Positions 3,774 to 60,352 of a stretch of 64,000 nucleotides of DNA are shown piece by piece; within the stretch, counting starts at the first letter, position 1, and each line of letters starts with the position of its first letter. This DNA comes from Epiperipatus broadwayi (lineage: Eukaryota; Animalia; Onychophora), in NCBI GenBank assembly GCA_028023455.1, contig JAQFVV010000010.1, positions 11,036,001 to 11,100,000 on the forward strand, in the 5' to 3' direction. The translations under genes and the position numbers were made by a program. The notes beneath the pieces were generated by a model. The model saw nothing but the letters and a program-made list of their open reading frames with translations. It was not told where the DNA came from and searched no databases.

Positions 3774-4720
3774 AAACAGGCAAAACTCTCCATACAGTAG
3801 TGCCACTCAGTGCAAGCCAGAGTAATCAATGGATGCCAGAAGGCTTGCACATAAAATCCCTATCCAGTGCCTACTCATCCAATATCTCCAGACTAGTTTC
3901 TGGCTTGTGGCCTTCATCAGTGAAGAGCTTTGGATTTGAGAGAACTGCATTTGGATCTTAGGATCTAATGCAACCCTCAAAAAGCCACCTTTTATCTCTA
4001 CTTAACTACAAAACTATGAGAATCAAATTAAAAACACAATAATATTTTCAATCTAAGCCCATTAGCCTATGTAGTCATATGGGTCTGAACTCAGTTCAGT
4101 ACCCATACATTTTGGTGTCTTTGCTTCTTTAATAACCATAGCCATCACTATTCTATTAGGCAGAATTGCTTGTAAACCACTGAACTTCACATGATCACCA
4201 TTTCTTATGCTTGCTCATAACTGTTATTAAAACAGGCAAAACTCTCCATACAGTAGTGCCACTTAGTGCAAGCCAGAATTATCAATAGATGCCAAAAGGA
4301 TTGTGCATAATATCCCTATCTATTTCCTACTCATCCAAAGACACCAAAATGTATGAGTACTAAACTGAAATTAGACCCATATGACTACATAGGCTAATGG
4401 GCTTAGATTAGAATATTATTCTTTTATATTTGATTCTCATAGTTTTGTAGTTAAGTAGAGATAAAAGGTGGCTGATGGAGGGTTGTATTACATCCTAATA
4501 TCTAAGTGCAGTGCTCTCAGATTTAAGGCTTCTCACTGACGAAGGTAGTCTGGGGATATTGGATGAGTAGGCACTAAATAGGGATTTTATGCACAAGCCT
4601 TCTGGCATCCATTGATTACTCTGGCTTGCACTGCGTGGCACTACTGTATGGAGAGTTTTGCCTGTTTTAATAAGTTATGAGCAAGCATAAGAAATAATGA
4701 TCAGATGATATTCAGTGGTG
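3774..4720. mobile_element. Family A (HHR retrozyme-like) composite: ~1.2 tandem units plus an inverted partial unit
   Basis: ACAGGCAAAACTCTCC recurs at 3776 and 4232 (period 456 bp); an inverted arm runs ~4339-4720. Confidence 0.9.
3877..3935 (-). ncRNA. Type I hammerhead ribozyme, intact core (family A)
   Basis: Minus strand reads AUCCAA AGC UCUUCA CUGAUGA AGGC CACAA GCCA GAAA CUAG UC^ UGGAGA UA UUGGAU. Confidence 0.8.
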
Positions 4721-5484
4721 TATTATTACTATTATATATCAATATACAATAAATATGCCAATAAATAAACTAGCTATCATATATAATTAAGTTCCTCATT
4801 CACAACTCATGTTTTAATACCCAGTCAAATCTTATTAATCATTATCAAGGCTAAATTATATACAGATAAAAAATAGAATTCCATTTTCTATCCCAATCTA
4901 AGCTGGTTAAATAGATTGTAACTAGACAATGATATATAATGAAGCAATATTAAGCAAATCAGGCTAAATAATTTAAATTGTTTACAAGGCATAGTTAATA
5001 TTTATTAAAGTTTATATTTTAAAAATCAATCTATTCTACTTTAAATAAATGTATAATAAACCAAAGATGTCATTAATTAAACTGGCTATCATACATAATT
5101 ATGTCACTCACTTCCAAATCATGTTTACTATGCTCTGCTAGATCTCATATACCATTATCAAGATTAAATTATAAAAATGGCATTCCACATTTTACGTTAT
5201 ATACTCATCTAAATTGTTCAAATAGATTCTAACTCAGATAATGAGAAATAACAGAGATAAAATTATAAATCAATCAAATAAAAAAAATGTAACTTTATTC
5301 CAGTCAGCTTAAATTAAAATTCTCAACTGGTATATAATTTTGCTCCATTATTTGTCATTGTGGATGGTTACAGTAAATAGAATTCCCTTTATTGATGAGA
5401 ATTGATGATTATGTTAAGTGTGACTTGGGGGTGAGTTATATGACTGTCAGTTTAATTACTGGCACATATGATATTATTATAGAA

Positions 5485-6269
5485 CAGAGGTGGCCAAACT
5501 TTTAGACATTAGGGGTGACTTTTTTGATGAAAGTGTACCTGAGAGCGCCTATATTTTTTTTCAAAGTGTCGAATCGGAAACCAGAAAAAAACATTTTTGC
5601 CAAAACAAAAACTGGAATGGGAAAAAATAATGGTTTGAAGTCCTGTTTTTTTTTTTTAGAATGTACTTACAAATTGGTGTTTTTTTTATAATGGCTTTTT
5701 AGGTATTCACAAATATTGGTGATGTTTTTAGAAGATACTTATGAACTGATGAATTTTTTTCTATATATGAACTATTGAAGATATTTTGCTATGATTACTG
5801 TTAAACTACCTCAGATCTCTCTAGTATTACAATTTTTCCATGTTGTTTTATAAAATATTCATTAAATTACTATATAAAGTGTTTTAAAAAGTTCACAACT
5901 TCTTTGTTTTAAAATCAGTTCATTAAAATCCTTTTTTCTCCAGGACAAGTTATTTTCATTTCTCCTCTAGAAAAATGGCAATTAAATAATTTTAAGAATT
6001 TTAGCTCTAGCATTATAAAAAAATAACTTAATTCTTTTCAGCTTCTTCCAACATGTGTTTATTTTTGAGATCGACAATAACAACAGGTGTTATTTTAAAT
6101 TTAACTATTTTTACATGAGAATTATTTTGAATTTTTACTTTCTTTATTATTTTTTATATTCAAATCATCTCTGAATTTATCACTATAATTATCAATGTTA
6201 ATGTAAGTTTCGTAGTCAACTTCCAGAGATTCAACTGGTAAACCACTGTTGACATCTTGGCCACCTCTG
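5485..6269. mobile_element. Non-autonomous hAT (Charlie/Buster-like) element
   Basis: 13-bp TIRs CAGAGGTGGCCAA / TTGGCCACCTCTG; 8-bp TSD TTATAGAA / TTATAGAT (7/8, central TA). Confidence 0.85.
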
Positions 6270-6529
6270 TTATAGATTGATATAAAGGAAAACAATTTGC
6301 TTGCAAGATATCAATGAAAATGAATAACTATTATTTCTATCTTAAAACCATTTAAATTGACTGGAATGAAAGTAAATTGACTGATGATAATTTCATTCCA
6401 CAGACACTCTGTAATTCTGTGTCTAAGAAAATTTACTTAAATCCTTTGGATTATTTTATTTTTTAGACAATTTGGAAATTATCCAAATAGCAGCATCTTT
6501 AAGCTTTGGAAAATACTGATGTTATTTTA

Positions 6530-6980: not shown

Positions 6981-7544
6981 TATAAGACAAGAAGTATTTG
7001 TTTATTATATTTATAATATCACTTTATAATTTGATACTTTCTATAGTCATAATTTTGGATTTTTTTTTAATTAAGAGCTTGGATTTGGATAATTGTAAAA
7101 CATATAACTACGAATATGATAAATGCATAATATACAAAACAACATAAAAGTAAAAAAATGACCCTGATTCATGCCTTATATAAAAATTATACGCAACTCA
7201 GAGTGGTCCAATAATTAGTACTCATATAAGAAACTCCATTGCTTATTCTCTAAATGGAAGTACTAAATTCTTATAATTACATTAATATTTTGATTTTGAG
7301 ATATATCTAAAAGCTGCTAAACACCATCTTACCACTTATTCAAATAAAAATATATATTATAATAATAGTCAGAAGTACTTTTAAAACAGTATACATATTT
7401 CAAATAATCTATATCACACTTAATATCATAAAATTCAATTATTTGAATTATTAAAAAAATTTATATAGGTTTTTATTAATATATATATATATATATATAC
7501 ATATATTATATGTAATAGTACAATACCCATTATAGAAAATATTA

Positions 7545-9699: not shown

Positions 9700-10320
9700 A
9701 ACCTGTTAGCCACTTTACCTTCCCTTTCCATTCTCCACCCTAAATTTTCCCATAATCAGCTCCATCCCATTTCCACAACATAATCTTTGTCAACTCCATG
9801 ACCTTCATATCTAAACCCCCCTTATCTTTTCCCAAACCTAGCATAAAAACCAATAACTCACTTTCTATATAATCATTTGTACCCTTTCTGCTTTCAAGCA
9901 TTTACATTGAAGTAACAGATGCCTAATATTTTCTATGCCTTCCTTACACAACTTGCAGACTAAATCACCCATATTTTTCCATTTACGTGTATATTCCCTT
10001 GTTGCTAAAGATCCCGTTCGAACCTTAAACAATAAACTACTTTCCTTACTATTATCATAAATTAACTCACACTCAATGTTCCATTTACTTCTATATATAT
10101 TTAAACTCATTTTACTCTTCATAATAGTTCTCCATCTCTCCAACTCCCTATTCTTTATTAATGCATCTATTCTTCCATCCCACTCTTTATCACTATAACA
10201 CTCAACAATCCTCCTAACACAATCATCCCACCTTTTGTACAAGTATACTGACATAAATTCTTTATCCAAATCTTCTGCATATCGCATTACCTTTCTCACC
10301 CATCTTGCACACATGACCAA
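9700..10320 (-). mobile_element. 3' fragment of a non-LTR retrotransposon (RT C-terminus plus Cys/His knuckle)
   Basis: ORF 9865-10320(-) contains LFKVRTGSL...CKLCKEGIENIRHLLLQC, typical of the zf-RVT-like ORF2 tail. Confidence 0.75.
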
Positions 10321-15180: not shown

Positions 15181-15262
15181 ATTTTATGCATAAACCTTCT
15201 TGCATCCATTGATTGCTCTGGCTTGCACTGAGTGGCACTACTGTATGAAGAGTTTGGTCTCT
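15181..15262 (+). mobile_element. Family A fragment
   Basis: ATTTTATGCATAAACCTTCTTGCATCCATTGATTGCTCTGGCTTGCACTGAGTGGCACTACTGTATG. Confidence 0.85.
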
Positions 15263-15889
15263 GTGTATATTCAAACATTGATATAAAATGTTGGATCTTT
15301 CCATAATTTTTAAAATGATCTTGCAGTGATAATGGCACAAGTTCAAACTCATTATATTGCAGAGATTCTCAGTATTATATGACAGATTAGTCAATGTTTT
15401 GATCTTCAAAGATAAGTCATAATTTTTTTTTTTATTAATACCACTCACTATTTGCTATTCGCTCACTATTTGCTATTCAAATGAATGATTTTGGCTTCTA
15501 TCAATAAAAATGCTCCTGAATTATTACCATTCATTTTCTTGTTATTTTTTTCTTTATATCCACTAATATCTCAAGCATAACAAATCAAGAAAAAACTAGT
15601 TTATAAAAGCTCAAAAGCAAATCCAATATAAAGAAAGCTGCACCATTAAAAAATCAAGCCCCCATTTGGAAAACATTTAGAAGAGTGTATATCTGTAAAA
15701 AATATAAGCTAACTCCACTACTGTTTTTAAAATTATGTCATTTGTAAATAGTAAATATAAAAATATTTGATATAAAAACACTTTTATTTATTTAATTTGA
15801 TAAATAATCCACTAAAAAACAAAAAATTCTTTTTTATGTGTGAGCATAAAGAATGGTGGTCATGTTATGGTTGGGAATTTAATTTTACA

Positions 15890-16115
15890 CAGAAGCAAAA
15901 CTCTCCATACAGCAGTACCACTCAGTGCAAGCCAGAGTAATCAATGGATGCAGGAAGGTTAGTGTATAAAATCCCTATCTAGTGCCTACTCATACAATAT
16001 TCCAGACTAGTTTAGGCACTAGATAGTGGTTTTATGCAATAATCTTTCTGCATCCATTGATTACTCTGGCTTGCAGTGAGTGGCGATACTGTATGGAAAG
16101 TTTTGCCTCTGTGAA
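15890..16115. mobile_element. Family A short foldback
   Basis: Arm ~15890-16012 and inverted arm ~16013-16115. Confidence 0.85.
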
Positions 16116-16253
16116 AAACAGCTTGTGTAAATGCAAAGAATGGTAATCATATGATATTTTGATAATTTAATTTTAGTTGTTATTTGTAACTTTAAATAAA
16201 AAATGTAGTGTACCCATAAATTAATCATTTCAATAACTATTACATAAAAAATA

Positions 16254-17163
16254 TTAAAACAGGTAAAACTCTCTATACATATTGCCACTCAGTGCACAAG
16301 CCAGGGTAATCAATGGATGTCAGAAGGCTTGTGCATAAAATCCCCAACAATTTCCCACTCATCCAATATCCCCAGACAAGTTTCTGGTTTGTGGCCTTTG
16401 TCAGTAAGGAGCCTTGGATCTAAGAGCACTGCACCTAGATCTTGGGATCTAGTGCAATTCTCCAACAATCACCTTTTATCTCTACTTAACTACATAACTA
16501 TGAGTCTTAAGTTGAAAACACTATATTTTTAATTCAAGCTCATCAGCTTATATAGTCATATAGCTCTGAACTCAGTTCAGTACCTATACATTTTGGTGTC
16601 TTTGGTTTTTTAATAACCATAGCCAACACTATCCGATTAGGCAGAATTGGTTTTAAGCCAATAAACATCACACGATCACCATTTCTTATGCTTGCTTATA
16701 ACTGTTATTGGCTTAAAACCAATCCTGCCTAATAGGATGGTGGTGGTTATGATTATTAAAGAACCAAAGACAACCAAAATGTATAGGTACTGAACTGAGT
16801 TTGGACCTATATGACTATATAAGCTGATAAGTTTAATTGAAAATATTATGTTTTCAATTTACAACTCATAGTTTTGTAGTTAAGTAGAGATAAAAGGTGG
16901 CTGATGGAGGGTTGCATTAGATCCTAAGATCTAGGTGCAGTGCACTCAGATTCAAGGCTCCTCACTGACAAAGGTTACAAGTCAGAAACTAGTCTGGGGA
17001 TATTGGATGAGTAGGCACTAGATGGGGATTTTATGCACAAGCCTTCTGGCATCCATTGATTACTCTGGCTTGCACTGAGTGGCAATACTGTATGTAGAGT
17101 TTTGCCTGTTTTAATAACAGTTACAAGCAAGCATAAGAAATGGTTATCAAGTGATGTTTATTA
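16254..17163. mobile_element. Family A foldback of two full units with 13-bp TSD
   Basis: Arms meet at ~16706. TACATAAAAAATA at 16241-16253 and 17164-17176. Both HHR cores read CTGACAA (G8 lost). Confidence 0.9.
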
Positions 17164-18123
17164 TACATAAAAAATAGTGATTGGATTAATTAATTTATGG
17201 ACATCCCACACTTTATTTAAAGTTACACTTAACAATAGTACATTACTTATCAAATTGAATTAAGGTGCTTTTTTAGAAAATATTTTTTATATAATTTTTT
17301 AGTATTCAAGTCTATCCCTATATTCACTCCAATTTTTCAAAATTATTTATCATAAACAGGAAGCTATTTGTATTTAATTTTAAAAACTGAAAATGTAAAC
17401 ACTATCACTGTGTTTCTACTATTTGAAATTAAATTCATGCACATTAAAACTCAGTTCCAAGATTATTGTGTTTATGTAATCAATGGTTTGAAGAATCAAG
17501 TTATAGTTAAACAATCAAAAGAAATTAAGATTTCATCCTCCCTTTCTTTTTCCTTCTATTTTAATCAACTGCCATCAAATTAAATGAAAACATACTTTTA
17601 AAAAATTATAATACCATCTATTGTACATCACTAAAACTTACCAATCCAATTTCAATGCAGTTTTATATGTTGCTCATCAACACTGTTAGGTTGGACAACT
17701 CTGAAATATTGCATTTTGACATTGCACTGCCATCAAAACAGAACACTTATAGAAATTTTGAAGAAAATCCATTCCAGTAGTAGTAGGTTAAAAGTCAGAA
17801 GATTTGAAACAAATAAATAAAAGTCTTAAGTTAAATAAAAGAATTTTAAATATTACTCTAAAAGTAAGTTTTTTTCTAACACTTTTAAAGAAAAAAGATG
17901 GGTAACATTACAAAAAAATCATGTTAAAAATGATAATGTTAAATTGCTTCTGAGGGTGGGTACAAATCTACTAAAAATAATGATACATTCAGCTTGTTAG
18001 AGCAATATTACAACCAACCCTTCATTATAGATTTAAACTATAGTATTCTTGTTAATCAAAGGTTTGTTGGAGATAATAAAACTATTCGACTAGCAATTTC
18101 TAAAGTAACTATTTATTTTGTAA

Positions 18124-18462: not shown

Positions 18463-18555
18463 TTTTCCATATATCAAAACATTGACTGGGAAGCAAACCC
18501 AGGCCAGCTGCTTAGAAGGCAGCTATACTAACCACTAGGCCACCAATGCTTGACT
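18463..18555 (-). mobile_element. tRNA-derived SINE copy
   Basis: Reverse complement starts TCAAGCATTGGTGGCCTAGTGG and contains GGGTTTGCTTCCCAG. Confidence 0.7.
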
Positions 18556-21200: not shown

Positions 21201-21923
21201 AGGATAAATTTTAATCTGCATCTGAATTAAAAATGGAAAAAAAAAACTAAGATGCATAAGATAAAAGGTATCAGTGAAGAAAAGAAATATCTCACTAAGT
21301 AGACAAAAACATTAATAACATTTAATGATAGAGAGTTTGTTATAAGGTAGATTGATGGTGTGGGATGAAAGAACAGTTTCTGTTTTTATTATTCACAGCA
21401 AAGATGAAGATTATGTTTTGTTGAGACATTGCTGAATTCAAGTTAGTTTATTATTAACTATTATAAAATTTTTAAGGTGGATTTTTCTGCACAAAAAGTG
21501 TGGAATTATAGTCATTCAATTGACAAAACCATATTCAAATGGTGAAAATCTCTGATTTAGCTACTTATAATATTTTTTATACTAGTGACATAAAATTCTA
21601 GTGATGTTTTGCAGAACTAATATTGTGATATTTAGATTAATATACTGGCTCTGAAGACGGTTGCTTTGCAGGTCATAAAGGAATTTCAGTAGAAGTACTG
21701 TAGACTTATACAAAATAGGAGTCTTGCGTAGATAGGAGAGTGATCTTATAATAAACTTCATCTTTACCAATTACATATAGTAAGGAGTATGTCAACCTAG
21801 AATAAAAGAAGTGTCATAAATACTTTTTTTGATCATATAATTTACACTGACTATATACCTACTGCATGAAAAAGCCATGTAAAAAGAAGACAAGTTAAGG
21901 GTCACCATTTGAAAATATAAATA

Positions 21924-22675
21924 AACATCACATGATCACTACTTCTTATGCTTGTGTATAACTGTTGTTAAAACAGGCAAAACTCATTATACATATCGCC
22001 ATACACAGCAAGCTAGAATAATCAATGGATGCCAGAAGGCTTGTGCATAAAATTCCCATCTAGTGTCTACTCATTCAATATCCCCAGACTAGTTTCTGGC
22101 TTGTGACCTTTGTCAGTGAGAAGCCTTGGATCTGAGAGCATTGCACCGAGATCTTAGGATCTAATGCAACCTCCAGCAGCTACCTTTTATCTCCAATTAA
22201 CTACAAAACTATGAGTCTTAAACTGAAAACACCTTAATGTTTTAATCCAAGCCCATTAGCTTATATAGTCATATGGGTCTGAACTCAGTTCAGTACCCAT
22301 ACATTTTGCTGTCTTTGGTTCTTTAATAACCATAGTTACCACTATTCTATTAGACAGGATTGGTTTTAAGCCAATAAACATCACATGACCACCACCACCT
22401 CTTATGTTGTGTATAACTTGTTAAAACAGGCAAAACTCGCTATGCGTATTTCCACACACACAGCAAGCTAGAATAATCAATGGATGCCAGAAGACCTGTG
22501 CATAAAATCCCCATCTAGTATCTACTCATCTAGTATCTACTCATCCATTATCCCCAGACTAGTTTCTGGCTTGTGGATGAGTAGGCACTAGATGGGGATT
22601 TTATGCACAAGCCTTCTGACATCCATTGATTATTCTAGCTTGCTGTGTGTCGCAATACGTATAGTGGGTTTTGCC
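21924..22675. mobile_element. Family A (subfamily A2) ~1.4 tandem units plus inverted arm, 14-bp TSD
   Basis: Period 453 bp (ACAGG at 21973 and 22426); TGAAAATATAAATA 21910-21923 / TGAAAATAGAAATA 22676-22689. Confidence 0.9.
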
Positions 22676-22974
22676 TGAAAATAGAAATACATGACCATCC
22701 CATGAAAAATAGTAATGTGGGGGAAAATGAATAAATCTTAGATTTAACCAGATAAAAAAGTAGAGATGGTAACTATTTTTATTTTATTCAGGTTGGGGAA
22801 TCTCGTAATAAAAAAACAGGACTAACTTTTAGTTCAGTTGCATACCATAAGTAAGATATATAAAATTTGCAAATTAATTAAATATTTTTGTTAAAACTAA
22901 AAGTTTGTTAATACTAGAAATAATACTTTTAAATAAGAATATTTTGTTAGCGGCAAAGTTTTTTTTTTTTGTAT

Positions 22975-23045
22975 AGCATCCATTGTTTTCTCTGGCTTGC
23001 ACTGAGTGGCTCTACTGTATGGAGAGTTTTGCCTGTTTTAATTGC
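22975..23045 (+). mobile_element. Family A fragment
   Basis: GCATCCATTG...GGAGAGTTTTGCCTGTTTTAA. Confidence 0.8.
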
Positions 23046-23565
23046 AAAAAGATGCTAAGAAGGTATCACTTTTAAAATATATATAAATAATTATATAACA
23101 TAAAATTTGCAATGAAAAAAAAAAGATAGATTTTGGAAAACGTTTTATTAAATGTAAATGTATTGAAAAGTTATTTAATTATGATAAAAGAAGAGATTTT
23201 GAAGAAGGGAGTATATTCCATGTTAGCATGTGAAAAGAAGATATAAATGGAGAGATTCCATATAGATTGATTAAACAAATCCACGTTTCTTGAAATTGTG
23301 ATCGTTTGAAAACAAAGGAGTTTCAGCAAAAGGAAGAAAAATATAGCTGCTAGAAATTATAATACCATTAACTGTAATTGAAGAAAACTGCAACCTTAAT
23401 GGGAAACAGTGAAAATCTTTGAAAATAATAAAAAAAACATAAATAATTTAGCTAGAATCAAGGTTTGTGACTAGATATCCCTTTTGCATTGCCACAGCTT
23501 GTCCAGGTGGGTAGCAATCTACTTCTTCATAATGGAAGAACTGGCAGATGGGAAAACCTTGAAGT

Positions 23566-24052
23566 ATTAAACCACTAAACATCACACAATCACCATCTCA
23601 TGCTTCTTATGAGCAAGCATAAGAATGGTGATCCTGTGATGTTTAGTGGTTTAATATCAATCATGCCTAATAGGATAATGGTGGCTATGGCTATTAAAGA
23701 AACAAAGACACCAAAATGTATGGGTACTGAACTGAGTTCAGACCTATATGACTATATAAACTAATGAGCTTGGATTATAAACATTATTGTGTTTTCAATT
23801 TCAGACTCATAGTTTCGTAGTTAAGTAGAGATTAAAAGGTGGCTGCTGGAGGGTTGCATTAGATCCTAAGATCTAGGTGCAATGTTATCAGATCCAAGGC
23901 TCCTCACTGATGAAAGCCACAAGCTAGAAACTAGTCTGGGGATATTGGATGAGTAGGCACTAGATAAAGATTTTATGCACAAGGCTTCTGGCATCCATTG
24001 ATTACTCTGGTTTGCATTGAGTGGCACTACTGATGGAGAGTTTGCCTGTTTT
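23566..24052 (+). mobile_element. Family A near-full unit with short inverted 5' arm, 13-bp TSD
   Basis: AAAACCTTGAAGT at 23553-23565 and 24053-24065; inverted arm ~23568-23617. Confidence 0.9.
23892..23950 (+). ncRNA. Type I hammerhead ribozyme, intact core (family A)
   Basis: ATCCAA GGC TCCTCA CTGATGA AAGC CACAA GCTA GAAA CTAG TC^ TGGGGA TA TTGGAT; predicted cleavage after 23936. Confidence 0.8.
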
Positions 24053-24553
24053 AAAACCTTGAAGTGTCTATGAGAATGCCTTTTTTTCTAGAGTTGCATA
24101 AAGTGAAGTCAGAAGTAGTCTAAACTTCTACAAGTCCCAAGAATCTTTAAAGACCAAAGTAATTTGTTAATATGTAAAGTTTTCTAAATAAAAAAATATT
24201 TAAAACTGCAAATATCATAAATAAAATCATACCTGAAAGAAAATTAGATGAAGAGAATAGTGCAACAAGAATGATGGCAAATTCAACCAAATTAAAATTC
24301 ATTACTGTTAAAAGTTTGGGAATGCACTAAACTAAAAAATACATTATAATATGGCAGATGCTTGAGAAACTGAATGTCAGAAATTTTAGATATAAAAGTT
24401 GAGTATATTAGTTAATGTAGAAGTTTAAATTATACATACTATGTAAAAAGTATAATTTCTAATTAATAGCATATTTTTTAGAAAATATTAAACCTTAAAT
24501 TATAATAAGTTAATGTTAATTTATTACAATTTTTGTCTTAAATATTATTTATA

Positions 24554-24628
24554 TTTTCCATATGTCAAATGCGTTGAGCCGTGCTTGGAAGGCAGCTATG
24601 TTAACTGCTAGGCCACCAACACTTGACA
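24554..24628 (-). mobile_element. Degenerate tRNA-derived SINE copy
   Basis: GGCAGCTATGTTAACTGCTAGGCCACCAACACTTGAC matches the family 5' half. Confidence 0.55.
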
Positions 24629-25403
24629 AATATTATTTATAATTTGAAATATTAATATTTTTTAAAAACTATCTCTTAAGTTAATGATATTAAAAAAATA
24701 TCTCTCATATTTCTCTTTAATTTTAACTTAAAGCATTGAAAATATGAAATGACTGTACACTATTTTTTAATAATTTTATCATTCTCAGAAATGTAGTAAC
24801 TGATAGATATGTCTATATTAAAGAACAGTTTTTATTAATCCTGGGATTAAGATATAATAAATAAAAAATTGCAATGTAATTCATATATAATCATTTTTTA
24901 TAGCAAACAGTATTGGAGAGTCTGGTTTAGGTTCATTATACCTCAATCGAATAATAAGCATTTTATTAATAGTAATAATCACAAAGCAAATGATTTTCTA
25001 TTTAGGTCAAATAGTAGCAATATTAAAATACAACTTTGCTTATTTGTATTTATATTTAGTTTTACATCTTAGAAGTTTCTTTATCTTTCTTATCTAAACA
25101 GGAATGTGTGTGTTCATGCTATATGCATGATAATAATGATTGTGATAGTAGAACTAAATCACGAGGTAAGTGATAATATATGGCAATAATGATGAGATAA
25201 GTAATCATAATATAGTTATGTGATTATGGTGATAATGAAATAAATGAAGCTGCCTGATAAACATGATATCTAGAAATGATTAAAATCATAAGAAGCATTA
25301 TGTTACATCAAGAACATAATTATGTATATGAAGTCTTGTGATCAGCTGGGTTGAATCCAGGGATGAAGATTGAGATAAATAAGAGATTGTAAGAATTAAT
25401 AGG

Positions 25404-25821
25404 TTTTAAAACAGGCAAAACTCACTATACATATTGCCATACACAGCAAGCTAGAGTAATCAATGGATGCCAGAAGGCTTGTTCATAAAATCCCCATCTA
25501 GTGCCTACTCATCCAATATCCCCAGACTAGATTCTGGCTTGTGGCCTTCATTAATGAGGAGCCTTGGATCTGAGAGGGATCTGAGAGCACTGCACCTAGA
25601 TCTTAGATCCAAGGCTCCTCACTGATGAAGGCCACAAGCCAGAAACTAGTCTGGGGATATTGGATGAGTAGGCACTAGATGGGGATTTTATTCACAAGCT
25701 TTCTGGAATCCATTGATTACTTTAGCTTGCTGTGTATGGCAATATGTATAGTGAGTTTTGCCTGTTTTAAAACAGTTATACACAAGCACAAGAAGTGGTG
25801 GTCATGTGATGTTTATTGGTT
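25404..25821. mobile_element. Family A (A2) head-to-head foldback, 14-bp TSD
   Basis: TAAGAATTAATAGG at 25390-25403 and 25822-25835; arms meet at ~25603. Confidence 0.92.
25607..25665 (+). ncRNA. Type I hammerhead ribozyme, intact core (family A)
   Basis: ATCCAA GGC TCCTCA CTGATGA AGGC CACAA GCCA GAAA CTAG TC^ TGGGGA TA TTGGAT; predicted cleavage after 25651. Confidence 0.82.
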
Positions 25822-43534: not shown

Positions 43535-43632
43535 AATAAATATTAACTTTATGCACAAGCCTTCTGGCATCCATTGATTATTCTGGCTCGCATTGAGTGG
43601 CATTATTGTATGGAGAGTTTCGCCTGTTTTAA
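43535..43632 (+). mobile_element. Family A fragment
   Basis: TTTATGCACAAGCCTTCTGGCATCC...GGAGAGTTTCGCCTGTTTTAA. Confidence 0.85.
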
Positions 43633-46116: not shown

Positions 46117-46839
46117 TATTCTATGTTTATAATTAATTAAAACAAAACATTTATATTAATCTTTAACTTTATTTAAAGTTTATATCTTGGCTAGGAATGA
46201 TATGATAATCTCTAGCTTAATAAATGATTAGTAATAATTATTAATATATTTATCTAAGGTGGATAGTGTAAAGATGTGAATGCAGGAAGGTTGAATAAAA
46301 AGTTCTTAGATATTGATGATCATTTTGTGGATTTAAATTATATGCTAAAATGATTTAATTCATCTATCAACTTTTACAAAAATTATTATAATGACTCATG
46401 TTTAAGATTCATAATAAAACAATGATTATTATATTAAGTATATTAAAAGATTTGTTTATTTCAAGTTTGAATGAAATGAGAGAAATAAAGATATGAGTGC
46501 ATATCAATATCCAGCTTAATGAAATATTCAAAAAATTTATTAGGATATTTTATAAATGTTGGAGACAGATTCTCATTATTATTATTACTTGATGATGATG
46601 ATTATATGACTGCAATTTAAACTTCGTTTAGGGCAGTACTTTTTTCTTTACTATTTTTCTTATTTATATGACTGATCTTAGGATTTATCTTACATCTCTA
46701 TTTTTATTATGTTATACTAAGGATTGCAAGATTTTCTCTACAAATTGATGATATTAGGTAATTTATGACATGGCACAATGATAATAAAATGGTGATTAGT
46801 ATTGACAAATGTTTAATAGTATCATATTTTTAATAAATT

Positions 46840-47101
46840 ATTAAAAATAGGCAAAACTCTCCATACAGTAGTGCCACTCAGTGCCAACCAGAGTAATCAA
46901 TGGATGCCAGAAGGCTTGTGCATAAAATTCCTATCTAGTGCCTACTCATCCAATATCCCCACCCTATCTACTGCACAAGCCTTCTGGCATCCATTGATTA
47001 CTCTGATTGGCACTGAGTGGCACTACTGTATGGAGAGTTTTGACTTTTTAATAACAGTAATGTGCTAGCATAAGAGGTAGTGATCATGTGATGTTTAGTG
47101 A
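46840..47101. mobile_element. Family A short foldback with probable 12-bp TSD
   Basis: TTTTAATAAATT 46828-46839 / TTTTAATAAGTT 47102-47113. Confidence 0.85.
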
Positions 47102-47879
47102 TTTTAATAAGTTCTGAATTATCTTTGTATCTCATAAACAAGAGGAGACTATAACTTTAAATTATAGCTTGGGGAAAAGTGATTTATTCCCTTTGTTTAC
47201 ATATACATGGAGCTATGTGTGATTTAAACTTTACATATTAAATCTTGTTTAATTATTACAATCAAGGTGTTAAAAGTGATATGTTGTCTACACCTTGTAT
47301 TATTAATTATGAGTTTAAGAACTTTTAACTGCCATATTTCATTTGTTTGATAAATTAATTTCACTCTGAATTACCAAAAATGTTGACAAAAGTATGCTTA
47401 TAAACATCAGAGCAACTAAAAATAGATGGATTCATTTTTATTGGATTTATCCTATTCTTGATTCATTTGTTCAACATTTAGAGTGCTTTCAAGTCATGGC
47501 CTGGGAAAAGTGCTTTACTCCCATTGTTTACATTGAGGTATGTGTTTTTTTTAAAACTTTGTATCTATAACGTACTGATAATCACTAAATTAAATGTAAT
47601 ACTTTTCAAAAAAATCTAAATGTCATACTTACAAATAATGGACCTTTTCATGCATATATCAAGTACATAGTTAAGAGGGCTCTCAAAATTATGGGTAAAT
47701 GTTAGGTATAGCAAACTATTTAATGATAAAATATGAATTATTTAAGTATTTTGTCTTTACTATTGTTGATTATATAGCTGTTATTTGGAGTCCTCACTCT
47801 TAAATGGAATATTATTGAAATCCAATTATTAAAAGATAAATTTTATAGACACATCAGGTTAAATAATAATAGCATGGTA

Positions 47880-50262: not shown

Positions 50263-50264
50263 TT

Positions 50265-50348
50265 TTAAAACATGCAAAATTCTCTATACAGTAGTGCCAC
50301 TCAGTACAAGCCAGAGTAATCAATGGATGCAAAAAGGTTTGTGCACTT
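50265..50348 (-). mobile_element. Family A fragment
   Basis: AAAACATGCAAAATTCTCTATACAGTAGTGCCACTCAG...ATCAATGGATGC. Confidence 0.8.
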
Positions 50349-52540: not shown

Positions 52541-53236
52541 CACAGGTATATAATAAGCCTGTGTGTTTCAGTTATTATAATTATTAATGTATTTTTTTAA
52601 AATTGACGTATAAAAGCTGTGGGTGCAGAAAGTGTGACAATTGGAAATCAAATTGTGTTAATTATTTAATACAAAGTATTCCAAAATAAAATTACTTTAA
52701 AAGAACATCCATATAAACATCGTATAAGTTTTATGTAATAAAAAGTAGAAAGAATAAATGAATGAGAAATACAAAATTTTAAATAAAAAACTATGTATCC
52801 CGTGCAGAAAATCATGAAGAATCAAATGCAATATACATGTTGCCTATGCGTGAACAACATAGTTGGAAAAAGATTTGTTTGCATGGATAAAACTAAACAT
52901 TTAATTCCAAAAAAAAATAGTCTACTTGTTGGAAATGTGTTTGTTAGATTAATTACAGAAAAATCTCTTAAGTCTGCCAAAGATTACTATCAAATGTTAT
53001 TCTTTCCTTTTTAGATATTAATATTGAGCAAAGAAATATTGATTTATGATTACATCTGGCAGCAATACTAATTGTGTATTAGTTTGACTTTGCAAATTAA
53101 ATAACTAGTATAATTGAAATAAGGTCAGGTAATATGCTGTATTCATTTTTGTTTCCAAACTCAATCATCAAAAGTAAACAAATTGGGTATTAATCTACAA
53201 TTGCACCAGTCCATATAGAGCATGGTAATGTTGATT

Positions 53237-53577
53237 TTAAACCACTAAACATTACATGATCACCATTTTTTATGCTTTCTCATAACTGTTATTAAAACAG
53301 GCAAAACTCTCTATACAGTAGTGCCACTCAGTGCAAACCAGAGTAATCAATGGATGCCAGAAGGCATGTGCATAAAATCCCTATCTAGTGCCTTAGATCC
53401 TAAAATCTAGGTGCAGTGCTCTCAGATCCAAGGCTCCTCACTGATGAAGGCCACAAGCCAAAAACTAGTCTGAGGATATTGGATGGGTAGGCACTAGATA
53501 GGGATTTTATGCACAAGCCTTCTGGCATCCATTGATTACTCTGGCTTGCACTGATTGGCTCTACTGTATGGAGAGTT
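53237..53577. mobile_element. Family A foldback; HHR has G12-to-A change
   Basis: Arms meet at ~53392; core CTGATGA AGGCCACAAGCCA AAAA CTAGTC. Confidence 0.88.
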
Positions 53578-55852: not shown

Positions 55853-57009
55853 CTTCATTCATAACCTGTAAATTATGTCTGGCAATCATTAGAAAACGAA
55901 GATTATAAAAAAATACTTAAACTCTCATCAGCTAGAAATTGGCAAAGCGGGTGAAGTTGGCGTGGAATAGGCTATATGTGATGAATTGAGGCAAACATAA
56001 TTTTTAGTTTTCTGTAAAATATAGTATTTTAAAAAAAATCAAGACATCTATTATCCAACTCCAATGCCAAAGCATTGAAAAAATTATTGATTATGAGATC
56101 AGCTTGCATGTGGTATTAACTGATTCTTTTCTGTTAAAAGGTGCTGGAATTTCACAGTTTCTATTCTATTTCGTTATAAAAGATCAACAACATAAAAATT
56201 AAAACATCTTTACATTTCAATTCAAGCTAACTTTTTATAAGGCTAATATTAGATCAGCAATTATCAATTATTATATCAATTTCAGTTATAAATAACAGCA
56301 GGTAACATTGGTCTTTAAATAAACACTATTTTTATACTAATTTTTAGCTAATTGGTATTTTTTGATTAAGATTCTGGGCACTACCATTGAATTCAGACAG
56401 CTTACAATATTCAATGTTTGGAATTGAATTAAAAATGATAACAGTATCTATTTCCATGTAAGCACCAAAAGTTTATAATGCTGAGTCTAATTATTGTATA
56501 AAATATATTGTTGATGATCATTCTGCTGAATACAAACACACATCTGTGTAAATATGTAATACGTTTAATACACAGTGTCTGAGATAGAATTTAAATATAC
56601 ATGTAGTAGTATCTTCCAATAATGACAGGTTAGAGATCAAATTCAGCTGTTAAGAAAATATTAAATGGATTAAGTCCTTTTTTCACTGAGAAATGCTTTA
56701 ATGACAAAGCAAAAAATCTTAATTCTATTGTATATAATATGTATTTTACATGGTTTGGTGCAGTGATAGAATGGTAGATTATGGAATTCAGGTCCATGGA
56801 TCATGACCTAATACTGACACTTTTGATGCTTAAACTTCGTATGAAAGCCTGAGCAATAAACCATTGGATTATTTTTCTATGGATTATGCTTTTGCAATTT
56901 TGCAAGATCTATTAAGCAATGATATGAAAGTAAAACAAATCTTATGTATTTTCTTTATTTATAATGACAAATATAAATTTGAAAATAAATATATTTATTA
57001 ATGAACTCA

Positions 57010-57596
57010 CTATATGTATTGCCACACACAGCAAGCTAGAGTAATCAATGTATGCCAGAAGGCTTGTGCATAAAATCCCCATCTAGTGCCTACTCATCCA
57101 ATATCCCCAGACTAGTTTCTGGCTTGTGGCCTTCATCAGTGAGGAGCCTTGGATCTGAGAGCACTGCACCTAGATCTTAGGATCTAATGCAACCCTCCAG
57201 CAGCCACCTTTTATCTCCACTGAGAGGAACCTTAGATCTGAGAACACTGCACCTAGATCTTAGGATCTAATGCAACCCTCCAGCAGCCACCTTTTATCTC
57301 CACTGATCTCCACTGAGTGGAGATAAAAGGTGGCTGCTGGAGGGTTGCATTAGATCCTAAGATCTAGGTGCAGTGCTCTCAGATCCAAGGCTTCTCATTG
57401 ACGAAGGCCACAAGCCAGAAATTATTCTGGGGATATTGGATGAGTAGACACTATATGGGGATTTTATGCACAAGCCTTCTGGCATCCATTGATTACTCAG
57501 CTTGCTGTGTGTTGCAATATGTATAGTGAGTTTTGCCTGTTTTGACAACAGTTATACACAAGCATAAGAGGTGATGGTCATGTGATGTTTATTGGC
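57010..57596. mobile_element. Family A (A2) head-to-head foldback with internal ~80-bp duplication and 11-15 bp TSD
   Basis: TTATTAATGAACTCA at 56995-57009 and 57597-57611; palindromic centre ATCTCCACT-G-AGTGGAGAT at ~57306-57324. Confidence 0.92.
57096..57154 (-). ncRNA. Type I hammerhead ribozyme, intact core (family A)
   Basis: Reverse complement identical to the consensus HHR at 25607-25665. Confidence 0.82.
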
Positions 57597-59079
57597 TTAT
57601 TAATGAACTCATTTCATTTCTAATTTAGCATTTAAAATACTTAATTTACATTATTCTTTTATCATTAGCACTAAACATAGATATGATTTGGTTAACAAAA
57701 TTATTATGTATATATTTACAAACCTTGAAAAATTGCTAGAAAAAGAAAGTGCATGGCTAATTGAAGCAGATAAACAAAGTGAATTACCAAAAATAAAATA
57801 GTACACAGTATATTTTTCAACCCAGATATTGAATGCATATTTCACCAATACCACCATAAAATAGCATGGACATATGGTGTCTTTATATCAAATCACTTTA
57901 ATCAGATATATTAGATTAATTACTTTTTAACAGAATTATAATTGTACACAAATAATAATAATAAAATATATATACTTTTTAAAGTAGTTTTTATCATCAA
58001 AATTAAAAAAAAAACCTGAGTTATTTTTCTCTTTTAAAATAAAAACTTGATTATTTATTTTTAAAAAAAGCCATTGAACATAATTTGAAAAAATGATTGT
58101 AATTTTATTTTAAAATATAATAGTAATCTAAAATAAATACAATTTTCATAATTATTTATTCATTTTGATATTATTTTATTTCCAATCTTAATGACAAAGT
58201 AAAATATTAATGCTATTGTGGGTATTATATATTTAAAAAAATATAAATATCAAATTTTTAAATATATTTTTATTTAATTAGTCAACTTATTTTAACTGTA
58301 ACATTAATACCTTATCAGACAGTGACAGTTAATTTTAATATAATCCAAAAAGTAAGGAATAAAGGCTATCATTTTCAAAGTCAATAACAAATAAATTTGA
58401 TGTTCCATGAAGTTCTTTTAAAATATTAGTGCATCTACCTGTCCAGAATCTGGAATCAAGTCAGCACTTAGTAAATCTTAGCAACTTTTTTAGTCATAAA
58501 TAGTCTTAGAATTTTTTCAGGTATATGGTCCATAGCCAATTCGACTACCATCCAATAATGATTGGTAAATGAGTATCTAGCTATTTTAGTTAATGAGAAG
58601 GTTTCAGGTAAATCTGAATTGGTCAATTGAGTATTGATATTCTAACTATAAAAAAAGGTTATAATATGTTACAATATCCATATTCCTAAAGTTGTTAAAA
58701 CCAGAATTTCCCTTTTTCCCCTATCATTTTTACTTCATCCTTATTTAACTGAAAATGGTAATACTTTTTCAGATATTTTTGTGAATATACAAGCAATGTA
58801 ACTAAAAATCTGTTATAACAATACAAATTTTAAATAAATATTATTTTCTATAGCATATCCAATAGTCTATATTTACAATGCAATCAAATAAAATATATTC
58901 CTTGACATTTTCTTACAGTTTCAACAGATCAGAAATCTTCATCAGAGCTAAAATATTCAAATATCTATGCCCATAAAAATTAGTACATATTTATGCATGA
59001 CTAATTATAATTATATAACACCCTATGTATAATAATTTACGCTACAAATTTTATGAAAACAAATATTTTAATGAACTTT

Positions 59080-59830
59080 ATAGTTATATATAATTGAAAT
59101 GAAAAATAACTACCTCTACTAAGTTATGTGACACCAAAAATCATGAAAGACAGAATATTACCATTCTATCTTTAAGCTCTCTTATTATATAAATATAGTT
59201 TTTGATGTAGTTTTGAAATTATATGGTGAATTTTATTCATTGTTTTAATTTATGTATAATCTAAATAATATGAAATCACATTCTTGGAGTCTTACTTTGA
59301 ACAAACTCTGAATGTTATATATCATTTTTGATTGTCAAGCATTGGTGGTCGAGAGGTCAGCACAGCTGCTTTACAAGCAGTTGTCCTGGGTTAGCGGGTT
59401 CGCTTCCCAGCCGTTGCTATAACACATGAAAAAAAAATCTGAATGTTAGATAAAATAGTAGTTTTTACAAATATAATAATAAATAATTATAACTTTTTTA
59501 AATGGATGTAATTAATATGAAAGTAACTACTGCCCACCGAGTAATGTGATATCAAAAATAGTAAAAGACAGAGTGATGCCACTGTGACTTTATGTTCTGT
59601 TGTTATATAAGCTTAGTTTTGGATGTACTTTTGAAATTATAGAGTGAATTTTATCTATACATAAACTAAATCAATAATTCACCCTATAATTTCAAAACTA
59701 CATCAAAACTAAGCTTTTATAATAAAAGAGCTTACAGAGTGGTATCATTCTGTCTTTCATTCTTTTTGATGTCACATATCTGAGTAGTAGATAGTTACTT
59801 CTATTTCAATTATGGATATTTAAAAAAGTT
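59080..59830. repeat. ~160-bp unit present twice in direct orientation and once inverted
   Basis: Copies at ~59080-59240, ~59500-59660 and inverted ~59675-59830. Confidence 0.65.
59335..59438 (+). mobile_element. tRNA-derived SINE copy (tRNA-Gly-like ends, A-tail)
   Basis: GCATTGGTGGTCGAGAGG (A box) ... GGGTTCGCTTCCC (B box) ... CACATGAAAAAAAAA. Confidence 0.85.
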
Positions 59831-60189
59831 ATGATTATTTAATATTACACTAATACTTATATATTTTTACACCTTCTCAACAATGTTCTTATAAATTTCA
59901 ACTTCGTATTTTGTATTCTTATTTTTATATGATTTTTTTAAATATATTTTTAATAAATATATTATTTTACATAACATTTTAATAATTTAAATTATTTTTA
60001 TCGTGAATTACTTAATTACAATACAGTTATATATTTCTAATTTTTCCAATGTTTTTAATTCTTTTTTCTTAATAATCCTATCTTTCTTCAACTCTAAAAA
60101 CTTTTTATCTCTCAAAAATTTAAATCGTTTTATATTTTATATACTAATTCTCACACAAACATATAATTTCCTAAGCTTACACAAGCAAT

Positions 60190-60352
60190 TATTAACAGTA
60201 GCAAGCTCTCCATATGGTGCCAACTAGTGCAAGCTTTACTAATCAATGGATATTGGATGAGTAGGCACTAGATGGAGATTTTATGCACAAACCTTCCTGT
60301 ATCCATTGATTATTAAGGCTTTCACTAGGTGACACTACTGTATGGAGAGTTT
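60190..60352. mobile_element. Degenerate family A foldback
   Basis: CTCTCCATATGGTGCC...ATCAATGGAT followed by TTGGATGAGTAGGCACTAGATGG...GGAGAGTTTT. Confidence 0.75.

Follow-up and report, generated by a model that had tools for sequence, protein, structure and literature searches.

The question raised by this stretch of the Epiperipatus broadwayi genome (64,000 nt of contig JAQFVV010000010.1, hereafter the window) is what kind of element is represented by the hammerhead-bearing repeat dispersed along it, and by what route its copies were inserted.

The repeat family in the window and in the assembly

BLAST of the window with a natural cleavage-to-cleavage monomer (L032:2229-2684) as the query revealed one non-coding family with a unit of ~456 nt, present as 14 insertions between positions 3773 and 60353 and covering 5,225 bp (8.2% of the window). 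The 30-nt core CTGATGAAGGCCACAAGCCAGAAACTAGTC was found three times exactly and four times with 1-3 mismatches in the window, at a chance expectation of 0. The GC content was 39% in the unit and 28% in the window, the host genome being very AT-rich, and the longest stop-free stretch of the unit did not exceed 61 aa. These results agree with the first-pass annotation of the window, which had described a non-coding unit occupying ~8% of it in about 15 loci; the hairpins that it had named, TAGATCCTAAGATCTA and CTGAACTGAGTTCAG, were both located within the unit. The tandem repetition with a period of 453-456 bp that it had reported was not found in the window: Tandem Repeats Finder detected no ~455-bp array there, no window arm exceeded 1.35 units, the longest same-strand stretches were 3773-4338 (1.24 units) and 21922-22537 (1.35 units), and the period of 456 was visible only as a terminal redundancy of ~110-165 nt.

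In the 5.6-Gb assembly, the 30-nt core was counted 22,261 times without a mismatch (reversed control, 0), with copies on every one of the large contigs listed. Subfamilies had unit lengths of 427-467 nt, and true tandem arrays of such units were found elsewhere in the genome, including an array of four 466-nt units that were 100% identical (L031). Thousands of contigs of the family, of uncertain type and resembling low-coverage DNA, were present in each of four coded organisms, and the 30-nt core sequence was absent from the searchable literature.

Anatomy of the insertions

The sample used for insertion anatomy comprised 55 insertions from the window plus 36 loci. Eight of the 14 window insertions were head-to-head, the left arm being on the minus strand, the right arm on the plus strand, and both being 5'-truncated; in the whole sample, 36 of 55 were head-to-head, none was tail-to-tail, and 19 were solo, five of the latter with a short inverted arm. 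The outer ends lay downstream of the cleavage site, the short one at unit 106-118 (mode 117) and the long one at ~160-175, with one arm carrying an extra "tail" of ~40-60 nt; a short end was paired with a long end in 32 of the 36 head-to-head insertions. Target-site duplications of at least 10 bp were found in 24/55 insertions versus 3/55 in the shifted control, and a typical insertion had a single duplication of 12-15 bp around both arms. The identity of arms within an insertion was higher than that between insertions (median 0.90 vs. 0.86, p = 1.8e-6) and reached 99-100% in young insertions. Poly(A) or microsatellite tails were absent from the 3' ends of the insertions. The description in the first-pass annotation included neither the head-to-head organization nor the Penelope-type insertion anatomy, the latter being the most informative feature of the family.

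Insertion 1 consisted of a minus-strand left arm at 3773-4338 (unit 9-456 + 1-118) with the short outer end at unit 118 (...GTTTTGCCTGTTTA) and a plus-strand right arm at 4335-4722 (unit 222-456 + 1-173) with the long outer end (tail), the target-site duplication TATTA(A/C)TATTAT lying on either side of the two arms; an intact hammerhead core at 3891-3920 (minus strand) had A-U in place of G-C at helix I pair 1.4-2.4. Two short head-to-head arms at 15886-16112 (unit 3-118, minus; 18-115, plus) were joined close to the ribozyme cleavage site. In the insertion at 16257-17160 (minus arm 16257-16695, end at unit 117; plus arm 16705-17160, end at unit 165; target-site duplication TACATAAAAAATA), the ribozyme cores were decayed in both arms (CTGACAA). 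The insertion at 21922-22674 combined the 1.35-unit minus arm (21922-22537, long end at unit 165) with a plus arm at 22574-22674 (short end at unit 110), and it had a decayed core (G8A; 22087-22116, minus strand) and the target-site duplication TGAAAATA.AAA. A ninth case was found at 23567-24051, where an inverted arm of ~45 nt comprised tail sequence only (unit ~175-129, minus strand) and accompanied a plus arm at 23609-24051 (unit 129-456 + 1-117); a palindrome was located at 23558-23664, the target-site duplication was AAAACCTTGAAGT, and the intact core at 23907-23936 (plus strand) belonged to the subfamily in which a compensatory change gives the helix II pair A10.2-U11.2.

The arms of the insertion at 25409-25824 (minus 25409-25615, end at unit 117; plus 25601-25824, end at unit 174; target-site duplication (A)GAATTAATAGG) were 94.6% identical; the plus-strand core at 25622-25651 was intact, the full motif with both helix I strands spanning 25607-25665, and the mirror core on the minus strand (25525-25554) was decayed. 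The ribozyme was absent from both short head-to-head arms at 46833-47104 (unit 1-130, minus; 40-172, plus). At 53231-53577, a minus arm (unit 19-180, long end) was paired with a plus arm (unit 375-456 + 1-106, short end), and the core at 53441-53470 (plus strand) carried G12A and is presumably inactive. The insertion at 57004-57599 had a minus arm at 57004-57300, which ended at unit 106 (short end) and contained an internal duplication of 83 bp, a plus arm at 57320-57599 (long end at unit 173), an arm-to-arm identity of 94.4%, the target-site duplication TTAATGAACTCA, and an intact core at 57110-57139 (minus strand). Solo fragments were revealed by BLAST on the plus strand at 15181-15268 (unit 34-119), 22976-23038 (unit 55-117), and 43548-43629 (unit 36-117), and on the minus strand at 50274-50345 (unit 40-110); a further plus-strand fragment at 60248-60353 (unit 4-108) had a possible diverged inverted arm upstream. 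The window copies are old, 5'-truncated, dead-on-arrival insertions.

The truncation polarity agreed in every case with the ribozyme strand. The copied strand is the hammerhead-bearing strand, copying begins at fixed sites and ends at variable 5' points, and arms can extend through several identical units. Synthesis is primed by both staggered target nicks, and a typical insertion therefore consists of two head-to-head arms from one template within a single target-site duplication of 12-15 bp. This structure matches the insertion signature on record for Penelope-like elements (PLEs), namely, 5' truncation, partial tandems, an inverted head-to-head copy, and a one-sided tail (PMC8557442).

The genome contained 10,241 GIY-YIG candidates and three PLE families with intact ORFs of 800-901 aa, the copies of which were 96-99% identical. 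Among the matches listed, all close pairs of PLE GIY-YIG matches (19/19) were minus-then-plus, i.e., head-to-head. In 38 PLE loci (~170 kb), neither a PLE sharing sequence with the unit nor a canonical hammerhead was found; similarity to the unit was limited there to L067 and L044, apparently separate insertions of the family, and to a ~71%-identical stretch in L075, none of which adjoined a PLE ORF end. PLE remnants were found neither in the window nor in the retrozyme loci. Homology to a pLTR was not found, and the link between the family and PLEs rests here on insertion anatomy.

The hammerhead motif

A descriptor scan of the window detected an intact core with helices I and II at exactly four sites, 3920(-), 23907(+), 25622(+), and 57139(-), which are the four copies that the first-pass annotation had regarded as intact. 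The motif is a type I hammerhead with a GUC cleavage site, in which helix I (6+6 bp) is interrupted by an internal loop, helix II consists of an A.A mismatch (10.1/11.1) at its base followed by 3 bp, and helix III is reduced to one A-U pair that closes the palindromic loop CUAG. Because helix III is limited to 1 bp and its loop is palindromic, the ribozyme should act as a dimer; for newt and axolotl ribozymes with this type of helix III (1 bp and a palindromic tetraloop), a requirement for dimers has been documented (PMC7229834). Cofolding of two 63-nt motifs predicted a double hammerhead with intermolecular ACUAGU/ACUAGU pairing (MFE -38.4 kcal/mol vs. -34.8 for two separate monomers), which is consistent with the earlier suggestion that the palindromic stem III favors dimeric cleavage. 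According to this prediction, cleavage would be most likely within a double hammerhead formed through pairing between the ACUAGU stretches of two ribozymes. In characterized ribozymes, catalysis is weakened both by a mismatch at the base of helix II and by a 1-bp helix III (PMC7229834). The Infernal check against Rfam that had been proposed was negative, no hammerhead family giving a match at the gathering score, or at E ≤ 10 on 23000-27000 and on the 80-nt stretch 25596-25675. The circular monomer was predicted to fold with -148.9 kcal/mol (z = -7.9 vs. shuffles) and 70% of its bases paired. Since no window locus has two intact ribozymes on the same strand, the release of a unit-length RNA by double cleavage is impossible there.

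The double change G10.2-C11.2 to A-U in helix II was present in 6,071 copies in the assembly, whereas from the single changes at 10.2/11.2 (932 A.C and 691 G.U) independence predicts ~29 doubles; a compensatory change at ~200 times the chance expectation shows that the amplifying lineages retained helix II. Among 71 copies sampled, the pair was GC in 55 and AU in eight, with no one-sided changes, and 91.7% of cells overall were paired versus 24-45% in slid controls. The sole variable core position among copies was N7, which is also the sole core position free to vary. Among copies, conservation was 0.946 in the hammerhead region, only slightly above the 0.921 of the remaining unit. No spike at the cleavage site was seen among the 5' ends of 62 arms taken without selection (two within ±2 nt); thus, the genomic record holds no direct trace of in vivo cleavage.

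Mode of copying and place among known elements

The whole reading that we consider quite probable is that of a non-autonomous, non-coding non-LTR retrozyme family, with a unit RNA released by the hammerhead and copied by PLEs. The defining traits of metazoan non-LTR retrozymes are shared by the family, namely, dispersed, high-copy non-coding units with a type I hammerhead in each, tandem arrays, a predicted circular monomer with strong self-pairing, and a minimal, palindromic helix III (PMC7229834), and in this respect the assignment made by the first-pass annotation stands. The tandem arrangement does not apply to the window copies, the circRNA replicon that it had proposed, with any RNA-to-RNA replication, is only a candidate reading, and the kind of element, an animal non-LTR retrozyme with PLE-type integration, is already well known. 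Source loci with at least two tandem units would be transcribed, and the type I hammerhead of each unit, acting as a paired dimer, would cut after GUC. The resulting RNA of unit length would probably be ligated into a circle with a high degree of self-pairing, and the RT/GIY-YIG endonuclease of a resident PLE would then use it as the template in target-primed reverse transcription.

A PLE-dependent SINE-like retroelement, in which the hammerhead is an inherited relic without cleavage or circles and an ordinary linear transcript is the template, appears unlikely, even though several observations fit it: the Rfam hammerhead models have no match, the A.A mismatch is combined with a 1-bp helix III, the 5' ends show no accumulation at the cleavage site, the 3' ends lie 117-175 nt past that site rather than at it, and conservation of the ribozyme hardly exceeds that of the remaining unit. 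However, the dominant sequence, with its 22,261 exact copies, keeps all 13 core nucleotides, core variation is confined to N7, and the 6,071-copy subfamily carries a compensatory change far beyond chance. Axolotl hammerheads with the same type of helix III, one of them with a mismatched helix II base, cleave as dimers. A template that is circular or of unit length is compatible with the arrays of identical units, although these could alternatively reflect transcription of a homogeneous array into multimers or a recent duplication at the DNA level.

Mobilization of a SINE by a LINE (non-LTR) reverse transcriptase instead of that of a PLE is very unlikely. Twin priming by L1 varies the outer end of the inverted arm, whereas the outer ends here are fixed on both head-to-head arms; the 3' ends have no poly(A) or microsatellite tail, partial tandems with a one-sided tail of 40-60 nt are PLE hallmarks, and PLE copies of the same genome show the same minus/plus pairing. 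LINE-type RT fragments do occur in the window (RVT_1, 28673-28957; zf-RVT, 9865-10320), and variable target-site duplications and 5' truncation are LINE features as well. Slightly less credence still is given to a DNA-level element, either a foldback/MITE-type transposon whose arms are inverted or a satellite propagated through unequal crossing-over, which would account for the long palindromes at many loci and for the identical-unit arrays, and "satellite DNA" is the historical name for retrozyme-like repeats. The internal junction and arm length differ in every insertion, whereas the outer ends are fixed, which indicates that each structure was built anew and not cut and pasted. The outer ends are also non-equivalent (short and long in 32/36 insertions), the target-site duplications are variable (12-15 bp), the copies are dispersed on all large contigs listed, and the truncation polarity always follows the ribozyme strand.

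Among invertebrates, schistosome Sm-alpha and cave-cricket pDo500, which the first-pass annotation had likened to this family, likewise represent type I hammerheads in short non-coding repeated DNA. Both repeats are included in the seed alignment of Rfam Hammerhead_1, a model that gave no match to the motif studied here (80-nt stretch 25596-25675, E ≤ 10). Plant LTR retrozymes are similarly non-autonomous, with a circular RNA intermediate presumably released by their hammerheads; however, these hammerheads are of type III, the plant elements possess LTRs along with a primer-binding site and a polypurine tract, and they combine 4-bp target-site duplications with Gypsy-type mobilization, none of these features being present in this family (Cervera et al. 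2016, PMC4918200). With the retrozymes of the coral Acropora (220-240 nt) and the mussel Mytilus (PMC7229834) and with vertebrate retrozymes, described as PLE derivatives on the basis of co-occurrence and pLTR homology in Xenopus (bioRxiv 10.64898/2026.07.22.740005), the family shares a type I hammerhead within non-coding units that are either arrayed in tandem or dispersed, a low GC content, target-site duplications of more than 4 bp, and PLE co-occurrence. In the invertebrate ribozymes published so far, helix III is stable and monomers cleave well, whereas the ribozyme here is of the dimeric type.

In this last respect, the family resembles the amphibian non-LTR retrozymes, namely, newt satellite 2 and axolotl Rtz_331/HHR_Amex1 and Rtz_353/HHR_Amex2 (Cervera & de la Pena 2020, PMC7229834), which also have a type I hammerhead in each non-coding unit of a few hundred nt, tens of thousands of copies, a single-bp helix III with a palindromic tetraloop implying a dimer (here, A-U closing CUAG), a highly self-paired predicted circular monomer, and PLEs in the same genome; the base of helix II is mismatched as in HHR_Amex2 (A.A here, U.U there). 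The two differ in unit length (427-467 vs. 330-350 nt), are unrelated in sequence, and the host here is very AT-rich. In axolotl, in vitro cleavage and in vivo circles were shown (PMC7229834), whereas the present family is known from genome sequence; the head-to-head tailed anatomy found here is not described in that paper, where "inverted" occurs 0 times. Compared with PLEs (Evgen'ev & Arkhipova 2005; Craig et al. 2021, PMC8557442), the unit is only 456 nt, non-coding, and without an RT or GIY-YIG ORF, its tail is 40-60 rather than 30-40 nt, and its long helix I, with 6+6 bp around an internal loop, contrasts with the very short helices found in the "minimal" hammerheads of pLTRs (Cervera & de la Pena 2014). 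The sampled resident PLEs showed no sequence similarity to the unit and had no canonical hammerhead. Meanwhile, the family shares with PLEs the 5' truncation, the partial tandems, the inverted 5'-truncated head-to-head copy, the tail at one end only, and a dimer-type hammerhead with almost no helix III, and with the resident PLEs the minus/plus pairing of copies.

The hammerhead motif and its variation across the genome

The repeat family carries the motif AUCCAA-GGC-UCCUCA CUGAUGA A-GGC-CACAA-GCC-A GAAA CUAG UC^U GGGGA-UA-UUGGAU, in which helix I consists of 6 + 6 bp with an internal loop between them and is open-ended (type I topology), and helix II consists of 3 bp above an A10.1·A11.1 mismatch. 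Within one molecule, helix III is reduced to the A15.1-U16.1 pair closing CUAG; the palindrome ACUAGU can pair over 6 bp intermolecularly, and a 6-bp helix III forms between two molecules only. When two 63-nt motifs were cofolded, the minimum-free-energy structure was a double hammerhead (−38.4 kcal/mol vs. −34.8 kcal/mol for two separate monomers). The catalytic core of hammerhead ribozymes comprises C3-U4-G5-A6-N7-G8-A9, G12-A13-A14, A15.1-U16.1, and the cleavage site H17; the corresponding core CUGAUGA ... GAAA ... ACUAGU-C^ was kept in four copies of the window and in 29 of the 71 copies sampled for alignment. The core 30-mer CTGATGAAGGCCACAAGCCAGAAACTAGTC was found in the window in three exact copies and in four copies with 1–3 mismatches, the chance expectation being 0. 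A structure-aware scan (CUGANGA, helix II, GAAA, a UH site, and five or more of the six helix I pairs) returned exactly 3920(−), 23907(+), 25622(+), and 57139(−), which are the four copies that the first-pass annotation had named as having intact cores. The search with Rfam hammerhead models, which the same annotation had put forward as a check, gave no match at the gathering score, nor when 4 kb or the 80-nt motif alone was scanned at E ≤ 10; consequently, the ribozyme identification rests on the descriptor and on covariation and not on a curated model.

Genome-wide counts of cores by the helix II pair 10.2-11.2 were 22,261 for G-C, 6,071 for the A-U double change, 932 for A·C, and 691 for G·U, whereas only about 29 A-U doubles were expected under independence. 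These counts are evidence that the fold mattered during amplification, and the A-U change itself goes back to a single event or a few events rather than many. In the 71 sampled copies, 91.7% of the cells assigned to helices I and II were paired, compared with 24–45% in slid controls. The G-C to A-U change at helix I pair 1.4-2.4, as seen at 3920, occurred in only 31 genome copies, a count that is uninformative on covariation because single changes were not counted. Per-position conservation was 0.946 in the ribozyme and 0.921 at the other unit positions, a weak difference that was not counted as evidence. The sole core position with common variation in the alignment was N7, with U in roughly half and C in roughly one fifth of the copies; the CpG at C7-G8 seems to decay either to U7, with the core still valid, or to A8, the dead core CTGACAA, which suggests that the genome undergoes decay of the CpG methylation type.

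Insertions in the window and elsewhere in the genome

A natural cleavage-to-cleavage monomer taken from a young array in the genome (L032:2229-2684, 456 nt) served as the BLAST ruler, and unit positions were counted from the cleavage site. In the window, 14 insertions between 3773 and 60353 were identified, which together occupy 5,225 bp (8.2%); the earlier hand estimate of approximately 8% was accurate, and both hairpins named with it were confirmed by comparison with the unit. The description of the window copies as tandem did not hold, since Tandem Repeats Finder detected no array of approximately 455 bp there and the same-strand runs reached at most 1.24 and 1.35 units by BLAST. The window thus contains partial tandems only, and arrays with a unit spacing of 427–467 nt are found elsewhere in the genome. 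In one array (L031), four 466-nt units were 100% identical to each other; in L032, the identity between units was 98.5–99.1%, and the identity between arms equaled that within arms. An assembly of three haplotype sets was ruled out, as unique window sequence had no second copy, and the copy counts therefore refer to the 5.6-Gb assembly. A search of sequencing runs gave 14 contig-level runs of uncertain type, and no run recorded as RNA contained the family. In four of these runs, from four differently coded organisms, thousands of short family contigs were found; contig depth was greatest at the ribozyme and the initial ~75 nt of the unit, which is uninformative on transcripts.

Eight of the 14 window insertions were head-to-head, with a minus-strand left arm and a plus-strand right arm, and a ninth had an inverted arm of approximately 45 nt. 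The identity between arms was 86–95%, which indicates that the window insertions are old. Intact or near-intact cores numbered 4 per 64 kb in the window against a genome mean of ~0.3 per 64 kb, calculated from 28,332 cores in the 5.6-Gb assembly, which amounts to an approximately 12-fold enrichment. Insertions were clustered at 15181-17160 and 21922-25824, and adjacent or nested insertions were also found at four genomic loci (L007, L021, L031, and L036). Clustering and enrichment may reflect a preference for sites near existing copies or for AT-rich DNA, or selection by the scan. In the minus arm of insertion 57004-57599, an 83-bp tandem duplication (two copies, 96% match) was located at 57141-57306; it corresponds to unit positions ~349-425, immediately upstream of the ribozyme core. 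Insertion 16257-17160 is flanked, outside its target-site duplication, by inverted repeats at 16197-16256 and 17161-17220 (...gtgtacccataaattaatcatttcaataac / gtgattggattaattaatttatggacatcccac...); since these flanks are mutually inverted, the retrozyme was inserted within another palindromic or MITE-like element.

The anatomy was analyzed in 55 insertions from the window and 36 genomic loci, of which 28 were selected by similarity to window:3780-4340 and eight were chosen among the listed exact matches to the core. Among them, 36 were head-to-head, none was tail-to-tail, and 19 were apparently solo, including five with a short inverted arm that BLAST had missed. The inner ends (5′ on the ribozyme strand) varied, and the outer ends were fixed. 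The latter fell into a short class at unit positions 106-130 (mainly ...GGAGAGTTTTGCCTGTTT at 117) and a long class at 140-190 (modes near 160, 165, and 174), and 32 of the 36 head-to-head insertions had one short and one long end, with either on either side. A GTTTAAT motif common to both outer ends was considered and discarded, given that the long ends are spread across positions 158-180. A direct repeat of at least 10 bp (at most one mismatch) flanked the whole composite in 23/36 head-to-head insertions and in 24/55 overall, compared with 3/55 in the shifted-boundary control. The target-site duplications were ~12–15 bp long, and a single duplication enclosed both arms; examples in the window are GAATTAATAGG (25409/25824) and AAAACCTTGAAGT (23567/24051). 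The median identity between arms was 0.90 within the same insertion and 0.86 between different insertions (Mann–Whitney p = 1.8 × 10−6). In young insertions, the arms were 99–100% identical and yet differed by about 10% from other copies.

Several further features of the window were recorded. A very long (TAG)n microsatellite (~237 copies) that continues into (AGC)n occupies 256-965 and 859-984, and the two long ORFs that span 192-1044 are artefactual products of the repeat. Reverse-transcriptase fragments at 28673-28957 (+; Pfam RVT_1, 5 × 10−11) and 9865-10320 (−; zf-RVT, 8 × 10−7) are probably decayed LINE-type elements. A 172-bp tandem repeat (two copies, 94% match) at 37712-38060 is unrelated to the family. 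tRNA-like sequences were detected at 18478-18549 (−) and 59339-59418 (+) and in a genomic locus with a Penelope-like element (L073:2520-2599, −), with Rfam tRNA scores of 39.5, 32.6, and 28.1 bits, respectively; the copies at 59339 and in L073 are near-identical and have a 12-nt T-loop insertion. They look like members of a tRNA-derived SINE family and not tRNA genes.

Template, integration, and resident Penelope-like elements

The polarity of truncation always matched the ribozyme strand, which indicates that the hammerhead-bearing strand is the reverse-transcribed one. The formation of the palindromes by simple snap-back (self-primed hairpins) was rejected because the arms are unequal in length and do not share inner or outer coordinates. 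Insertion 5′ ends showed no spike at the cleavage site (2/62 within ±2 nt), and a mild excess was observed over −26 to +12; arm-length decay or stalling of the reverse transcriptase can explain this excess, and the 5′ ends were not accepted as evidence that cleavage in vivo has left a fossil record. The 3′ ends lay 117–175 nt beyond the cleavage site, which rules out priming at the cleaved 3′ end of a linear monomer; the positions are compatible with a circular or multimeric template.

Penelope-like elements (PLEs) are characterized by frequent 5′ truncation, partial tandems producing pseudo-LTRs, an adjacent inverted 5′-truncated copy, and a 30–40-bp tail confined to a single end (Craig et al. 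2021, PMC8557442). All four hallmarks were present in the family insertions, the tail being ~40–60 nt long as against 30–40 bp in PLEs (PMC8557442). The genome contained 10,241 GIY-YIG candidates, and three PLE families had open frames of 800–901 aa, with copies 96–99% identical; the PLE reverse transcriptase/GIY-YIG machinery is therefore potentially active. In the Atlas, the PLE ORF was placed in RVT_1/HTH_animal/GIY-YIG clusters with mixed taxa (Arthropoda and Chordata). In our reading of the match list, each of the 19 pairs of closely spaced GIY-YIG matches was minus-then-plus, as were all ten close opposite-strand pairs of ribozyme cores on contig C1; thus, the resident PLEs and the repeat share an unusual integration geometry.

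The intact-frame families, coding for reverse transcriptase and GIY-YIG (800–901 aa), are represented by loci L069 (G000:C12394:20942000-20951900), L071, and L073, and one of them is arranged as a head-to-tail tandem (period 3,135 bp), with an inverted copy upstream. No canonical CUGANGA...GAAA hammerhead was found within ~900 nt on either side of the ORF in these three loci. Such an absence near the ORF is unusual for PLEs with a C-terminal endonuclease. The search for an autonomous partner covered 30 GIY-YIG loci and eight loci with long PLE ORFs, 38 in total, which is a small fraction of the 10,241 candidates, and was performed by regex hammerhead scans, Rfam on three PLEs, blastn, blastx, and tblastn. 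The 38 loci contained no canonical hammerhead, and no homology was found by blastn or blastx between the unit and the PLE ORF, pLTR, or 3′ end (38 PLE loci and eight PLE ORFs). The unit matched these loci only in two apparently separate family insertions (L067 and L044) and, at ~71% identity, in a stretch of L075. Within the window, tblastn with the PLE ORFs revealed no Penelope remnant. In Xenopus, by contrast, retrozymes have been linked to PLEs by homology to the pLTR (bioRxiv 10.64898/2026.07.22.740005), and no such homology was found here in the 38 loci.

A bolder proposal, which we regard as unlikely, is that this repeat serves as a natural, minimal substrate exposing the unsolved mechanism of Penelope integration through double priming on one template. 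According to this scheme, the target would be cut with a stagger, and both 3′-OH ends would prime reverse transcription on one unit-length, probably circular, RNA. Priming would occur at two fixed sites approximately 40–60 nt apart, nearly always one of each (32/36 insertions), and the two cDNAs would extend in opposite directions on the target and meet at a random joining point; synthesis could circle the template several times, producing identical units. If double priming is correct, the PLE tail, pseudo-LTR, and inverted upstream copy would be outcomes of double priming on a circle and not products of endonuclease resolution, and the role of the hammerhead would be to make the circle.

Significance and comparison with known retrozymes

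To our knowledge, retrozymes are the sole route to small ribozyme-processed circular RNAs from animal genomes. What mobilizes them is still argued on the grounds of co-occurrence, shared hammerhead type, and pLTR homology in Xenopus. The insertions described here provide an independent line of evidence, in that a 456-nt noncoding unit shows the complete and unusual signature of Penelope insertion (arms joined head-to-head and copied from a single template, a tail on one side, and a target-site duplication of 12–15 bp) thousands of times, including insertions with arms still 100% identical. The value of the family is that of a clear example, very abundant and active until recently, in which the anatomy of the insertions connects retrozymes with integration of the Penelope type, and no mention of such evidence was found in the retrozyme literature examined. 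A full-text search of the literature for the core sequence yielded unrelated primer strings only. The family is a convenient system for testing target-primed reverse transcription of the PLE type, and it also poses the question of whether a weakened, dimer-only hammerhead (A·A at the base of helix II and a 1-bp helix III) is enough in vivo. For annotation, it should be noted that the family accounts for 8% of the window and for many palindromic "foldback-like" loci, which are liable to misclassification by repeat finders.

Metazoan non-LTR retrozymes have a noncoding unit of 150–450 bp with one type I hammerhead and occur as dimers to multimers; they are devoid of LTRs, a primer-binding site, and a polypurine tract, have a GC content below 50%, and have target-site duplications, if any, of more than 4 bp (PMC7229834). 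Their circular monomers are predicted to be highly self-paired, and linear and circular unit-length RNAs are expressed (PMC7229834). In the family studied, the GC content of the unit was 39% (28% in the window), the longest stop-free stretch was 61 aa, the target-site duplications were ~12–15 bp, and the terminal redundancy was merely unit sequence; the arrays (427–467 nt) are at the upper edge of the published unit size. The main reading of the first-pass annotation, a non-LTR retrozyme, was right. Its claim of novelty was too strong, since elements of this kind are already known, and the label "replicon" was overstated. The newt ribozyme and axolotl HHR_Amex1 have the same type of helix III, with cleavage of 6% as a monomer and efficient cleavage as a dimer (PMC7229834). 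In axolotl HHR_Amex2, the base of helix II is mismatched as well, with U·U (PMC7229834) in place of the A·A found here. Folded as a circle, the unit had a predicted energy of −148.9 kcal/mol (shuffles −105.5 ± 5.5 kcal/mol, z = −7.9) with 70% of its bases paired, and this predicted fold is similar to those of the published retrozyme circles.
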